Part shown: in pieces, positions 446-11,153 of the stretch
Position numbering within the stretch: the stretch's first letter is position 1
Layout: each line of letters begins with the position of its first letter
Assembly (NCBI GenBank): GCA_037379345.1
Contig: CM074513.1
Span: 47,347,195 to 47,411,194 of the forward strand
Direction: 5' to 3'
Length of the DNA: 64,000 nucleotides
Origin: Perna viridis
Lineage: Eukaryota
Notes under the pieces: model-generated
What the model was told of the DNA's origin: nothing
Databases searched by the model: none
Seen by the model: only the letters and a program-made list of their open reading frames with translations
Program-made: the position numbers and the translations under genes

Positions 446-971
446 TTAAAGGAACAGGGAAAGACTAATTTTGAAATGAAAGAATAGTACTTCGGTACTT
501 TTTCAAAGCCATCTTATAATGGATAATGTTTAGAAATGTAAAAAACGCGCTTCTTTTGCGCGTATCAGTGTATAGACCTGCAGCGGTTGCATATACGTGT
601 ATGATGTCTTAATTAATCATTAAAGCCCGGGACCTAGTTTCGTGCCAACAGGCTACTGGAGTCATTATCTGTCTAGGTTAATGAGCTCATCATAGAAACA
701 GTCTCTATCGTTTACAATGTTCCTACGCGGGACAATACAATGTGTGCCAGGGTTCTATCCCTTACAGAAACCTAGACAACAATGAAAGCACAGGTTTTAA
801 ACCCTTGAGAAGATTCTAATCTTACCCTTACATGAAGATATGTAATTGGTTCAATACTTTAAACCTTAAGGTAGCGATTATGATCTTAACGACACGTAAT
901 AGGATCTACATTCAACACAGTGCAACGTAATACATGAGTAATCGAGGATTTTTCACCTGGTGAAACTCCTG

Positions 972-1006
972 TGACGTCAATCGACTGAAATATTTTATAT
1001 ATAAAG
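972..1006 (+). promoter_or_regulatory. Candidate Pol II promoter: full CRE (TGACGTCA, 972-979) plus TATA box (TATATAAAG, 998-1006)
   Basis: Both motifs are read directly, 18 nt apart, 105-140 nt upstream of the candidate start codons of a small ORF. A TATA-proximal CRE is the classic arrangement of cAMP-inducible promoters. Confidence 0.6.
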
Positions 1007-1143
1007 CTTACTATAGTATTGAAGTGATATATAACAACATATCGTGTTGGTGGGAATCATACAGGATAATCTGATAGATAGAATACTTTGAACGAAAAAT
1101 TTTACTTCTAATGTCAGTACTTGCTCTTACTATGTCAGTTCAA

Positions 1144-1365
1144 ATGGAAAGGCAGAATTCTGATGTGTTCATCCAAAATGGACACGGATATACACCGAGG
1201 AGGAGAAATGCGATGGGGGACATATTCCAGAACGTTGACCATGAGGTTTTGTACAGTAAGCTTTTACAAGAACTTAAAATGAATGGCTGTGAGTCGGAGT
1301 CAGTTAGCCAGGAAAACAACCCGACAAATGATGGCTGTGATGATACTGGAAACAAATTCGGGTAA
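1144..1365 (+). CDS. Putative cAMP-dependent protein kinase inhibitor (PKI)-like microprotein, 73 aa (in-frame upstream ATGs at 1111 and 1132)
   Basis: MERQNSDVFIQNGHGYTPRRRNAMGDIFQNVDHEVLYSKLLQELKMNG... resembles PKI (DFIASGRTGRRNAIHDI ... LALKLAGLDI): RRNA-hydrophobic pseudosubstrate followed by xDI, a leucine-rich NES-like segment, an acidic low-complexity tail and similar length. CRE/TATA upstream and AATAAA at 1757. Confidence 0.6.
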   Translation: MERQNSDVFIQNGHGYTPRRRNAMGDIFQNVDHEVLYSKLLQELKMNGCESESVSQENNPTNDGCDDTGNKFG

Positions 1366-1756
1366 AATAAAACGGTTTTTGGTAATTTCAATAATTTAAC
1401 TTCTGGCAACGCAGTGAGTAATCCAAATGGCTTCTGCCGGTTTTATGAATGTGTTCATACCGGGATATACGAAAACTCTGCATAGACTTAACACTCTTGT
1501 GATCTGGAAAGAACAATTTACGACAGAATGTAATGGGAGAGAAGTATTGTGGAAGAAAAAAACTTTACTCTTATGAACTAAGGTTTGTTTTGAACATTGG
1601 TCTGTGGATTGGGTATATCAGTGTAAATCTTGCTTCCAGTGTTGCTTTTACTCCATGAACATAAAATGCTCAAATTGCATGTCATTGTATGTTTTGTTTC
1701 GTTTTTGTTTTGTATATTTTTATGCTCAGAGTCTTTTTACATATGTTGATTGTTTT

Positions 1757-1762
1757 AATAAA
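1757..1762 (+). terminator. Candidate polyadenylation signal of the PKI-like gene
   Basis: AATAAA about 390 nt after the stop codon, preceded by U-rich sequence. Confidence 0.4.
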
Positions 1763-2559
1763 AATGTAAAGAAGTGAACCTTTAGTGGATAATTCATTAA
1801 ATTCTTACAAAAGAATAGCAATGTAGCTAAGACAGCACAAGGGCAACAGGACAGATTCATTAGTTTTATACTAAAACACAGCAAAATTTTATATTTTGCC
1901 TTTAGATTCCAAATACATAATAAATGCCAATTCCCGTAGCAAGCTTAAAATAAAGAGTATTATCAGCATTAACTACATTGCAAGAATGTTGCAGACCAAA
2001 CAGATCACAATAAACTGATATCATAATGATCACAGTGCATTTAATCACTGGTAAAGCTGTATTAAAGTTCATAAAAAATATATTTTAAATGTTAGCATTA
2101 TTTGACTACATGTATAAGTTCGATATTGGCATGAGCTGATAAGATGCAATTAATGAATATCAACCTGGTCAAGCTTTGTACAGATCGAACATATTGATAT
2201 CAGCTGTTATGAAAACATACAGTGCTAGCAACGATACTACCCACATTCGCTAAACGCTTTTTAGTTAACCGGAAAATGTCGAGGTTTATATCACTTGCAT
2301 ACTCTCAAGTCTCCAGTCACCAGATATTCATTTTTTTATCATTTATATTTATTGGAGTTCAACAGTACATTGGACTGAAAGTATACAGAACATAATCAAC
2401 AATAGATTTCTTTATATTATATGTTTATTTTTATTTATATTTTAGTTCTCTTGATTTTGACTTGAAATCAGGCCCGTTGCTATGCAAACAGAATGTCTAT
2501 GACCACGCCCTTTAAGTGACAAAAAAGAGGACTGCTAGTCTGTAAAAGATATACACGTA

Positions 2560-2960
2560 TAATATGTAGGTTACATTATGTTTTTAAAACGAATTGTTCA
2601 TAAAAACGATAATTAAAGTCGCATACTACAAATATATAAATAATTCAACCAGCTCAGTTCTATAAAGACTATCTAATAGCATGGATGAAACATGTAGAAA
2701 CTATTACATAACTTGATTTGTAAGCGAATAATGTGATGCTTAAATTGAAGTCCCTATTCGCAGAGCTAATACAGCCGACCCCTCCTATTCCTCTATATAC
2801 CATATCCAAGTTTAATTTTACTCTATAGACTGGTGTATCATACTTTGATTCATTCATCATCCTTTCAATGAAATTGGCTCCATGTTATTGTTTGATCACC
2901 AATTATCTATCAACCTTAAGTAACCAGTCTAGTCTTCATCCGATGGTTTGTACTGAATAT
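2560..2960 (-). mobile_element. Highly decayed Penelope-like element RT fragment
   Basis: Translation NLDMVY...NRDFNLSITLFAYKSSYVIVSTCFIHAIR resembles the recalled PLE RT block YLDL...KRDDFNFxIVNFPFLSSNIP...YISQLIR. Confidence 0.35.
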
Positions 2961-3724
2961 AAAACGGCATTGTGCTGATCAATATCAAAAATTCTTCTTT
3001 ATTGGGGATGAATAGTCGACATAAATATGGTTTGTTTATTATATGTAAAAAATGTGCAATAAGATATTCAAACTATGTTTTCACACTTAATGACGACTTT
3101 GCTTTGTTTCATCAAAACAATAACTCGAGATGTACGTTGATATTTCTAACTTGGTATAAGAAGTATGTGAGAATGTTCATTTGTCTTTAAAGTTTGCTTT
3201 TGTTTGTCTTTGGTTAACCGTATTTAGTGGTATTCACCTAATTTGCTTGCAAGATCGACTTAATGGGCCTTGAATGTACATTGTCGTTCTTGCATTTGAA
3301 TGACTAAATTCACAAAATCAATAATAACATATATTGTACAATTCGGGTTTCCCAAAACTAATTGCCTGAATGATGAATATGAAATATTCAATAGAAGTTG
3401 ATTTTCGAATAAGACATGATTCATTACATCAGTAGATTTTTTTATAACAATCAATATTCATGTTTCATGCTCGTGAATCGACAAATATGTATTATGTAAC
3501 CATGGTGACTTTATAGACAGCCATCTAGTCATGCTTATAAGTTACATTAAAACATTTTTATACAATTCTTATTTTTTCTAATTAGAATTGCATCTTTCTT
3601 GTGACTTCAGCTGGGAAGTGCGATGACTGATTTTGAAAATTTTGTTTAGTTTTACACATCTTTTATTTGACGGATTGTCATTTCTGCCCCCACGCTGATT
3701 CCGCTGAATGAGTTTTTCTTCTCC

Positions 3725-3785
3725 TTTTTTTGGTTTGTTTGTTTTGTTTTTGTTTTGATTTGTTTTGTTTTTTTTTTTTTTTTGT
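3725..3785. repeat. T-rich / (TTTTG)n low-complexity tract
   Basis: Seen directly. Confidence 0.8.
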
Positions 3786-5814
3786 TCATTTTTATATGCA
3801 TTGACTGATGTAATAATGTACATTTATAACGCACTAAATAAACTTCAAACTTATAAAACCTACACATATTCTAAGAATGCTGCATAACTTCCACCCCTCC
3901 GAGATAAATAAAATTGACATGTAAAAGTGAAATTCTGTGGTTTTCCAGAGATATTCATTGAATTTGTATTTTTTTAATGTAACATATGATAACCGGACTT
4001 TGTCAATTGACTTCGGGGGTCAATAATACACTAATGACGTCATTGCGGTTTATCCGATGTAGGTCGTCAATCAAAAAGAATTATGAAATTGATAAAAGTG
4101 ATGGTTTGAAGATAATTGATAACGGAAAACCGACAACTTTGTCTGTCTGATCATACATGTAAAAATATGTTGTGACGTCAACCAATTATAGAAATATGTA
4201 ACATACTAACCAGATAACACAGAGAACGAGAAATCATGTAATTCATACACCTTTAAATGCAAATATTAACAAAGTTAATTAAATTATACTTATCCAAAAA
4301 TATAGCAGCGAGCGTTCTCTTAATGTTTCTCCTGTATATGACTATAGTCTTTTGTAATAATCACCTATATTGTTTTCCGAACACACAATTTACTTCTAGG
4401 ATGTCATCTGGGTTTTCTTACTTTCTACTACGATTTGACTCTTAAGTCACCGACCAAATAAAAAAGAAAAGCAATTTTTAGATATTATACTTCCATGATG
4501 TTTCAACAGTTAACTAAATGTGCTATTTTATTGAAATATGCTGTACTGTGTTAGGTTGAATGATTTGACGTTATCAAATAAATTAAATGATGACCCAAAA
4601 TAATGAAATTAAATAATGTTCAAAATCGCTTAAGAAAATTACTTTCTGCTCTGTAAAAGCCGATTGAATACGATGACGTCAAAGCTGGTCTTTGTTCGCA
4701 TACTATCATTATATTAATGTGGTTGATAGATTATTTAATAACCATTTCTTATGAATGTAAAAAAGAATTTAGTCAGGAGACTGGCAAAAAAACTCAGTCC
4801 AAATTATGGTCGATATTTGCTATTACTACATATTTTGTTGGATTCGATAAGATTTTTTTTTTCGTAAGCATCGTGGGGTTATAGTATGTGCATTTAGTAT
4901 TCAATATTTTTATATCATAGTATCTAGTATTTAGTATACGTAGTATTAGAGTATTCTATCCCGATTTTATTTACTTTTACTTATGCATGTATCTCATTGC
5001 TATTGAATATTATTGTATTGAACTGATTTGCACAAATGTAAAATATGTCTCAAGAAGTCGTTTGTATTCTTTGAAGACGGGGTCACATTATCATGGAACT
5101 TGGTATACATGTTCTCATTATGTGAATTGTGGGATGTGTGTCATTAAGTACAATAATAATAATAAAGTGTCACTTACGATTGGTGCATCGGTTTTGCGTC
5201 GACACATTTTCTGATTTCCGCTTTATAAAAAAAACTCTCGGAAACATCAAAAAGAGCATTTTGTTGTTGTTTTTTTTCACGCTATACTACATGTCATTGC
5301 TGCATAAATCCCTACATCAACTGCATACCTTACATGTTCATGCTGTAAGCTTATTTTTTACATGTAGGTAGTCTTTAGCTAGACTAAATTAAATACATAT
5401 AGTCCATGAAAAATGGAGTTAGACATGATTTGTAACACAACGAGTGAGGACCCCCCACATTTTAATTGTTGTCAAAATGCGTTATGAAGTGAAAATGGAA
5501 AATGTAAAATTCCTCTATTACTGATAATTGTTGAAAACATTTTGCTTTTGTTGATCTTTGCGTGTCGTAATTTATCTCTCGGTTTACTCCTGTATGGAAT
5601 AGAATCTGATATACATTTTAATAAGGTTTCTCATACATACCTGGATGTTAAGATATAAAACGGTGAAGTAAAGACGAATACAGCACCATTATATTGTTGT
5701 TTCATCCAAAATTTAGAATAACATACATTCTGTACTGGAGCATTCATGATTTATAACTAATGTGTTGGTTATTAATCTGGAATTCATTATGTAAATATTA
5801 TGTCTCGTTTGTAG

Positions 5815-10902: not shown

Positions 10903-11153
10903 AGATTTGTTTGAAAAAAAAAACAGAGTTTACTGTTACTATCTGATTTGAGATGTTTGTAAGTATAAAAATTAGACGTCTATTACATTCGAGAGTTAGA
11001 CATATGAATTGTTAAATATAAACTACTTTAATTACGAGGGTGACAGTAAGACAGGGTCTTTAACAAATTGGTAGATAGTATTAAAAACTGTAGATTACGA
11101 AAATGAAGTTATATTACCTATTGTCACATGATGACGTCATATGGATATTTCAG

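Follow-up and report, generated by a model that had tools for sequence, protein, structure and literature searches.

We analysed a 64-kb stretch of the Perna viridis genome (the whole stretch is referred to here as the window), near the beginning of which lies a small gene encoding a protein of 84 residues, preceded by a cAMP response element (CRE). All features of the gene given below are on the forward strand. The perfect palindromic CRE, TGACGTCA, is located at 972–979, and a TATA box, TATATAAA, lies 18 nucleotides (nt) past its end at 998–1005, as part of the TATA-containing string TATATAAAG at 998–1006. The single-exon coding sequence at 1111–1365 comprises 84 codons and a stop codon, and an AATAAA at 1757–1762, recognised by reading the sequence, is one of several candidate polyadenylation signals. 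An earlier note on this DNA had listed the CRE, the TATA string at 998–1006, an open reading frame (ORF) at 1144–1365 and the AATAAA at 1757, and had interpreted them as a complete mini-gene for a divergent molluscan member of the PKI family of protein kinase A (PKA) inhibitors. On reading the Perna viridis sequence, every one of these features was found where the note had placed it. The mini-gene is a real, transcribed, intronless and conserved bivalve gene that has escaped annotation; that it is real and coding we regard as virtually certain. Its product, as described below, is not a PKI family member by the tests run.

The reading frame is open from the ATG at 1111 to the stop codon at 1363–1365, and an in-frame stop codon is located upstream at 1075–1077. 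The ORF that starts from the ATG at 1144 encodes 73 residues, with the RRRNAMGDI and LYSKLLQELKM strings in its peptide, and represents the 3' part of the longer coding sequence. Since the N-terminus encoded from 1111 is kept in the orthologues, the start was placed at 1111 and the length of the protein is 84 rather than 73 residues. ORFs of 40–90 codons are numerous in this AT-rich window, and a 73-codon ORF is by itself unremarkable; the coding assignment was made from homologues, the ratio of nonsynonymous to synonymous rates (dN/dS) and the differences by codon position. At least three bivalve lineages have kept the ORF, and dN/dS in close pairs is 0.13–0.52. When the window is compared with the locus of the closest relative (L007), dN is 0.17 and the synonymous sites are saturated; the differences are distributed over the three codon positions as 17/11/43, and neither of the other two frames is open. 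The closest relative has the conserved start as well, which its gene caller had missed. Because dN/dS is below 1, third positions are in excess among the differences and the frame is kept across species, the ORF is protein-coding and under purifying selection, in line with the check on dN/dS proposed in the earlier note.

The stretch with the mini-gene is present in a single copy in the 723-Mb assembly. It was found in 20 public runs belonging to nine studies, and a Logan contig colinear with positions 1067–3402 of the window encodes an 84-residue protein with 99% identity. Four runs were aligned over a 6-kb stretch around the gene; judging by assembly size, three of them are transcriptome-like and one is genomic-DNA-like. 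The three probable RNA runs yielded unspliced contigs at 906–2391 (depth of 182×), 878–2612 (141×) and 631–3648 (311×), so that the deep unspliced contigs extend over 631–3648 in total, as determined from read-contig depth; the contigs carry neither the strand nor the true ends of transcripts. In these runs, the depth in the upstream flank is approximately zero and the downstream depth falls away, whereas the DNA run is flat at approximately 105×. Thus, the region is strongly transcribed and unspliced, and the transcript that the earlier note had predicted is found at a depth of 141–311×. The description of a complete mini-gene given there holds as regards an intronless, expressed and small gene; the start had to be moved upstream to 1111, and the polyadenylation signal at 1757 is passed by the RNA contigs. 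Since these contigs run on to 2391, 2612 and 3648, the AATAAA at 1757 is a candidate only. Further candidate signals are found at 1366, 1796, 1919, 1949, 2009, 2061 and 2612.

AU-rich elements are not enriched in the 3' region (5 observed versus 4.6 expected), and an Rfam scan of positions 500–5000 matched no family. Two peculiarities of the flanks can be noted. In one probable RNA run, a low-depth joint (5×) skips 1412 nt at 2953–4364; the skipped segment ends in CT..AC, which suggests a GT..AG intron on the minus strand and a weak convergent spliced transcript entering the 3' region of the gene. The other is a short dispersed repeat immediately before the gene, at 377–407, where short contigs of the DNA run reach 250–550× against the background of 105×, with loose ends and clustered joints.

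The promoter of the gene is better conserved than its coding part. A blastn comparison of the window with L007 gave two aligned segments only, namely the coding sequence (72.7% identity) and an upstream promoter block at 910–983 that includes the CRE (81% over 75 nt); no alignment was obtained by blastn for the untranslated regions of the two loci. On these grounds, the promoter is at least as constrained as the protein. In addition to the CRE, the block contains the bZIP-type half sites ACGTAAT (925–931) and TGAGTAAT (935–942), as well as TTTTCAC (950–956), which is overlapped by the E-box-like CACCTG (954–959). In seven orthologous loci, representing three lineages, the order of the promoter modules is the same: an ACGTAAT-like site, GAGTAAT, TTTTCAC, TGACGT and the TATA box. 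GAGTAAT, the CRE core TGACGT and the TATA box do not vary among these loci, and the full CRE palindrome is found in the window and in L007. The distance from the start of the CRE to the start of the TATA box is 24–28 nt across the seven loci; the distance from the promoter module to the ATG varies from 110 to 269 nt. A similar arrangement precedes the genes of much more distant, multi-repeat relatives of the protein, which are described below: a CRE or half-CRE stands before the TATA box in two of three such genes. In that for P0008, a perfect CRE (−162) is followed by a TATA box (−84), and in that for P0006, TGACG precedes TATAAAA by 10 nt.

Among promoter arrangements, a CRE close to a TATA box responds most strongly to cAMP, and a conserved CRE within approximately 100 nt upstream of a TATA box, by which a CREB-responsive TATA promoter is recognised, is what was found here. 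We infer that the TATA box is the core promoter of the gene. The conserved CRE and TATA box fit CREB control well, and the pattern of conservation makes it probable that the gene is cAMP/CREB-inducible; the CRE itself is likely to be functional.

The CRE octamer occurs in the window five times (starting at 972, 4035, 4173, 4674 and 11132), whereas 0.64 occurrences are expected and five copies were never reached in 100 shuffled sequences. Three of the perfect CREs (4035–4042, 4173–4180 and 4674–4681) lie within 650 nt of each other, approximately 2.7–3.3 kb past the stop codon of the gene, and another is found at 11132–11139. Together with the promoter CRE, the three downstream copies make four within 3.7 kb, compared with 0.64 expected per 64 kb. 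The cluster could serve as a downstream enhancer or mark a second promoter. In the locus of one relative (L008), a perfect CRE is located approximately 2.3 kb after the stop codon, and several loci of the same lineage have TGACGT approximately 820–940 nt after it.

An exhaustive HMMER search of 1.84 billion representative sequences revealed three full-length small homologues of the protein, which are 69%, 43% and 44% identical to it, along with three multi-repeat proteins, and a profile search added six further small members. The full-length homologues are 74–86 residues long; the extra length of two members was traced to a TGA stop codon read through by a gene caller using another genetic code. 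Three large matches (P0004, P0009 and P0010) were rejected as sums of weak repeats without the motif. All family members come from Logan, ENA or JGI assemblies, and the only name attached to any of them is 'hypothetical protein'; the ten members found in the protein search all lack an NCBI or UniRef source and a functional name, which agrees with the suggestion of the earlier note that such a gene would be missed by annotation. Searches of Pfam and of PDB sequences with the single ORF gave no match, the ESM Atlas contained no usable match for either the ORF or P0011, and a metagenome scan with the family alignment, in which 175 patterns were matched, returned no relatives. The protein is thus a member of an unnamed and unannotated microprotein family; it has 84 residues and is mostly disordered.

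Eight orthologues share the N-terminus, the core at residues 31–39, L51, E54 and the C-terminal Phe-Gly. The core, encoded at 1201–1227, reads RRNA(L/M)G(D/N)IF and shows no variation among the eight other than that in brackets, and the conserved C-terminal end N-(K/R)-F-G, in which F83 and G84 are invariant, is encoded at 1351–1362. In every orthologous locus, the ORF stops right after FG, so the position of the stop codon is also conserved. As a speculation, the C-terminal Gly could act as a Gly-end degron and make the protein short-lived. The AlphaFold2 model built with the family alignment predicts disorder (mean per-residue confidence, pLDDT, of 56.8) with a single amphipathic helix at residues 44–57 (encoded at 1240–1281); the highest block value, 82, falls on residues 41–50. 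The conserved hydrophobic positions 47, 51, 55 and 57 have the spacing of nuclear export signals, and such patterns are common. The leucine-rich export-type segment proposed in the earlier note therefore corresponds to a predicted helix that fits the pattern.

R31, R32, N33 and A34 of the core are invariant in the eight orthologues, with Leu or Met following at position 35; the RRNA-hydrophobic-x-DI core singled out in the earlier note is therefore an invariant element of the family, with the L/M and D/N variants. The substrates of PKA follow the rule R-R-x-S/T-hydrophobic. If the 15 repeats of the multi-repeat proteins P0006–P0008 are considered together with the eight orthologues, the Arg pair is invariant and never replaced by Lys, and the acceptor position is occupied by Ala or Gly, never by Ser or Thr. 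In the repeats, P-1 (the residue preceding the acceptor position) is free and P+1 is always hydrophobic. The core thus fits the PKA specificity rule minus the phosphoacceptor, and of all the resemblances to PKI this pattern of constraint says the most. The same RRNA-hydrophobic-x-DI is found in the genome's own canonical PKI. A search of the genome with the back-translated core motif indicated the window locus as the only convincing instance; two other matches, both on C11, were rejected, being located in no ORF and equal in number to the reversed-pattern control. When the family profile was compared with 177,635 distinct PDB sequences, a single weak match was obtained, to PKI alpha (14.8 bits, E of 0.24), which spans the pseudosubstrate, the export-signal region and the acidic tail.

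In the multi-repeat proteins P0006 (L024, 3001–4434), P0007 (L022, 109–1146) and P0008 (L023, 1001–1546), the motif RR-x-A-L-(G/A)-D-I-F is repeated 3–6 times in tandem, and a short segment of helix-like character comes after every copy. No relative of these proteins was found in the genome contigs with the queries used. They could be multivalent binders if the motif binds a kinase.

The Pfam PKI model (PF02827, cut-off of 25 bits) identified a single locus in the whole genome, on another contig (C14), with 52.8 bits. The exon in question (C14: 34169037–34169192, forward strand; 1498–1656 in L006) encodes a canonical PKI, which keeps the Phe at P-11, the Arg at P-6 and the RRNA and is 90% identical to the protein of Mytilus galloprovincialis named PKI beta-like by NCBI, an identity that also points to a mytilid-like bivalve as the host. 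Since the canonical PKI lies on C14, the microprotein is not the PKI orthologue of this lineage. Mollusc PKIs are almost invariant among themselves over approximately 45 residues. The AGC kinase genes of the genome are split into short exons.

The nearest Pfam family to the microprotein, below the cut-off, is TC1/TCIM (PF15063; cut-off of 27 bits, profile of 75 positions). It is the sole Pfam family touched by four of the orthologues, with 12.8–14.8 bits and E of 0.03–0.12 over profile positions 19–40. When the eight orthologues were scanned together with the three multi-repeat proteins (11 sequences), TC1 was matched at E ≤ 10 by six and PKI by two. The six-repeat P0007 passes the TC1 cut-off, its 38.4 bits being added up from weak repeats. 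All TC1 matches are confined to profile positions 19–46 of 75, and the TC1 model matched neither the ORF of the window nor anything in the genome; for this reason, the membership of the microprotein in TC1 is not established. TC1 has been described as restricted to vertebrates. The mouse Tcim is listed among the genes responsive to forskolin and ciliary cAMP, together with Crem, Nr4a1, Pde4b and Per1 (PMC9346484).

The reading that we tentatively prefer, giving it close to an even chance, is that the gene encodes an inducible PKA pseudosubstrate microprotein that provides negative feedback and is PKI-like by function and not by descent. According to it, a rise in cAMP would lead CREB-type bZIP factors to act at the CRE and drive transcription from the TATA promoter. 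The RR-x-Ala-hydrophobic core of the protein would then dock in the substrate groove of the catalytic subunit of PKA, or of a close basophilic kinase, and act as a non-phosphorylatable pseudosubstrate, and helix 44–57 may provide nuclear export. Taken together, these steps would constitute an inducible negative-feedback arm working like PKI. For the biochemical part considered separately, namely regulation of PKA or a close kinase by the protein as a pseudosubstrate, we would put the odds somewhat short of even.

A number of observations weigh against this reading. At E ≤ 10, the Pfam PKI model, which the earlier note had suggested as a check, matched neither the 73- nor the 84-residue form nor any small orthologue. 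An hhalign comparison of the family with 11 mollusc PKIs gave a probability of 15% over 13 columns, and the family hidden Markov model scored mollusc PKIs at 3–6 bits, with 7–40 of 4000 shuffled sequences scoring as high. The determinants of high-affinity PKI binding are missing: P-11 is Asn23 and P-6 is Thr28. Phe20 is at P-14, where other lineages have Ile or Ser; the caution expressed in the earlier note about a Phe shifted to P-14 and the lack of Arg at P-6 was thus justified. The match to PKI alpha among PDB sequences has an E of 0.24, and part of its score may be due to acidic composition. The basic cluster and the leucine-rich helix that follows it could serve for import and export and nothing more. 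The RNA contigs begin at 631–906, upstream of the TATA box, and do not give the strand; the transcription start near 1025–1040 proposed in the earlier note is accordingly a candidate only. The invariant Arg-Arg of the bivalve family corresponds to Lys-Lys in human TC1, its nearest named relative, and TC1 is described as a Wnt/Chibby regulator; a literature search found no paper that ties TC1 to a pseudosubstrate, and TC1 has no known link with PKA.

If the kinase is left aside, the core and the helix could bind a non-kinase partner, as TC1 binds Chibby in the Wnt pathway, and the protein would be a TC1/TCIM-like nuclear adaptor with an Arg cluster serving as an import signal and an incidental likeness to a pseudosubstrate. 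The Pfam matches of the orthologues, of which TC1 is the only family touched by four, its presence among the matches of six of the 11 scanned sequences and the score of P0007 above the cut-off (38.4 versus 27 bits) all point in this direction, and human TC1 shares more core residues than PKI when compared by eye and is likewise small and disordered. Nevertheless, the ORF of the window and the whole genome are unmatched by the TC1 model, only positions 19–46 of its 75 are involved in the matches, and nothing in the bivalve protein corresponds to the C-terminal half of TC1. Moreover, the strict RR, the Ala or Gly and the free P-1 look like the signature of a kinase groove rather than an import signal. 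We consider the adaptor unlikely, and yet the most serious of the alternatives. A true PKI paralogue, which arose by duplication of the PKI gene and diverged strongly, would account for the RRNA-hydrophobic-x-DI held in common with the PKI of the genome, for PKI alpha being the only PDB match and for two multi-repeat relatives touching the PKI model (E of 0.005–0.01); by eye, the upstream D-x-(F/I)-(V/I)-x-(N/S)-G also resembles the N-terminal helix segment of PKI, if three extra residues are allowed. This origin is improbable in view of the failure of the family model, the 15% over 13 columns in hhalign and the weak significance of the shuffle test; besides, mollusc PKIs are highly conserved and have nothing else in common with the microprotein family. 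Accordingly, the divergent molluscan PKI of the earlier note is not upheld: the canonical gene with 52.8 bits lies elsewhere, hhalign aligns 13 columns, the Pfam PKI search is negative and the nearest Pfam family is TC1/TCIM. By the sequence comparisons made, the microprotein is neither a PKI orthologue nor a member of the PKI family.

Two other explanations concern the nature of the product as such. The conserved (K/R)-F-G before the stop codon, the conserved RR cluster and the mildly hydrophobic, conserved first ten residues recall a secreted peptide precursor, in which a signal peptide would form the N-terminus, RR(R) would be a convertase site and the terminal Gly would be used for amidation to yield an (R/K)F-amide. 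It is very improbable: the hydrophobic run is only 7–9 residues long and lacks a basic n-region, the C-terminal end has no dibasic site in its vicinity, the cysteines are not conserved, and conservation is strongest just after RR rather than in a short peptide at the terminus; the N-termini of the multi-repeat relatives are not signal-like, and these proteins show no Gly-basic processing pattern. Finally, ORFs of this size are common in AT-rich DNA, the contigs are strandless and a low-depth minus-strand splice joint is located nearby, all of which would be compatible with an ORF that arose by chance in a non-coding RNA or in an untranslated exon of another gene. The conservation of the frame, the length and both ends in three lineages, the dN/dS below 1, the third-position excess, the closure of the other frames and the lack of a match to Rfam make this explanation extremely improbable.

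If the protein does bind PKA, bivalves would possess an inhibitor switched on by cAMP beside the constitutive PKI, forming a simple delayed negative feedback in a pathway that stands at the centre of plasticity, ciliary control and stress responses in molluscs. A broader version, which we regard as rather unlikely, would unite the microprotein, its multi-repeat relatives and vertebrate TC1/TCIM in one old animal family that is induced by cAMP/CREB and has a PKA pseudosubstrate as its core. Were this true, PKI would have a second, similar system beside it, inducible at the level of transcription and acting as a delayed brake on molluscan PKA signalling, with the tandem-repeat forms serving as multivalent sinks for the catalytic subunit, and the orphan oncogene TCIM would acquire a biochemical mechanism. 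The motif link with TC1/TCIM in any case gives rise to a biochemical hypothesis, amenable to testing, about a vertebrate protein whose mode of action is still vague. Whatever its function, the gene represents a clean case of a highly expressed, conserved and unannotated microprotein gene.

The promoter of the mini-gene resembles the immediate-early promoters of CREB targets of the somatostatin and c-fos type in having a full CRE approximately 25 nt upstream of the TATA box and bZIP-like half sites near it, and in the compact intronless gene that it controls. It differs from them in that the RNA contigs of the mini-gene reach upstream of the TATA box, and the cAMP response is here a prediction only. 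The protein can be compared with PKI in size (84 versus about 75 residues), predicted disorder, the RRNA-hydrophobic-x-DI with Ala at the acceptor position, the leucine-rich helix a few residues further on and the acidic tail. In contrast to PKI, the microprotein has its own conserved N-terminus, an invariant Gly-x-Ile-Phe after the core and the conserved C-terminal FG.

The human TC1 sequence was taken as printed in PMC11524581, and its core, residues about 22–52, was compared by eye with the bivalve family. The two have in common a His-Gly-Tyr, a basic pair and A-x-G-(N/D)-I-F-x-N-x-D-x-E-x-L, which is more than PKI shares with the family. Both proteins are small, TC1 being natively disordered, and the bivalve transcript is unspliced, just as human TCIM is a single-exon gene. 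However, the C-terminal half of TC1, which is helical and said to bind Chibby, is replaced in the bivalve protein by an acidic tail ending in FG. Segments of the R-R-x-Ala-hydrophobic type embedded in other proteins can arise independently of the PKI family. The PKA pseudosubstrate motifs of the RI inhibitor site, Smoothened and ARHGAP36 are similar to that of the microprotein in presenting R-R-x-Ala-hydrophobic in a disordered region; in these cases the motif is located inside large proteins, whereas here it forms the core of a free-standing microprotein.

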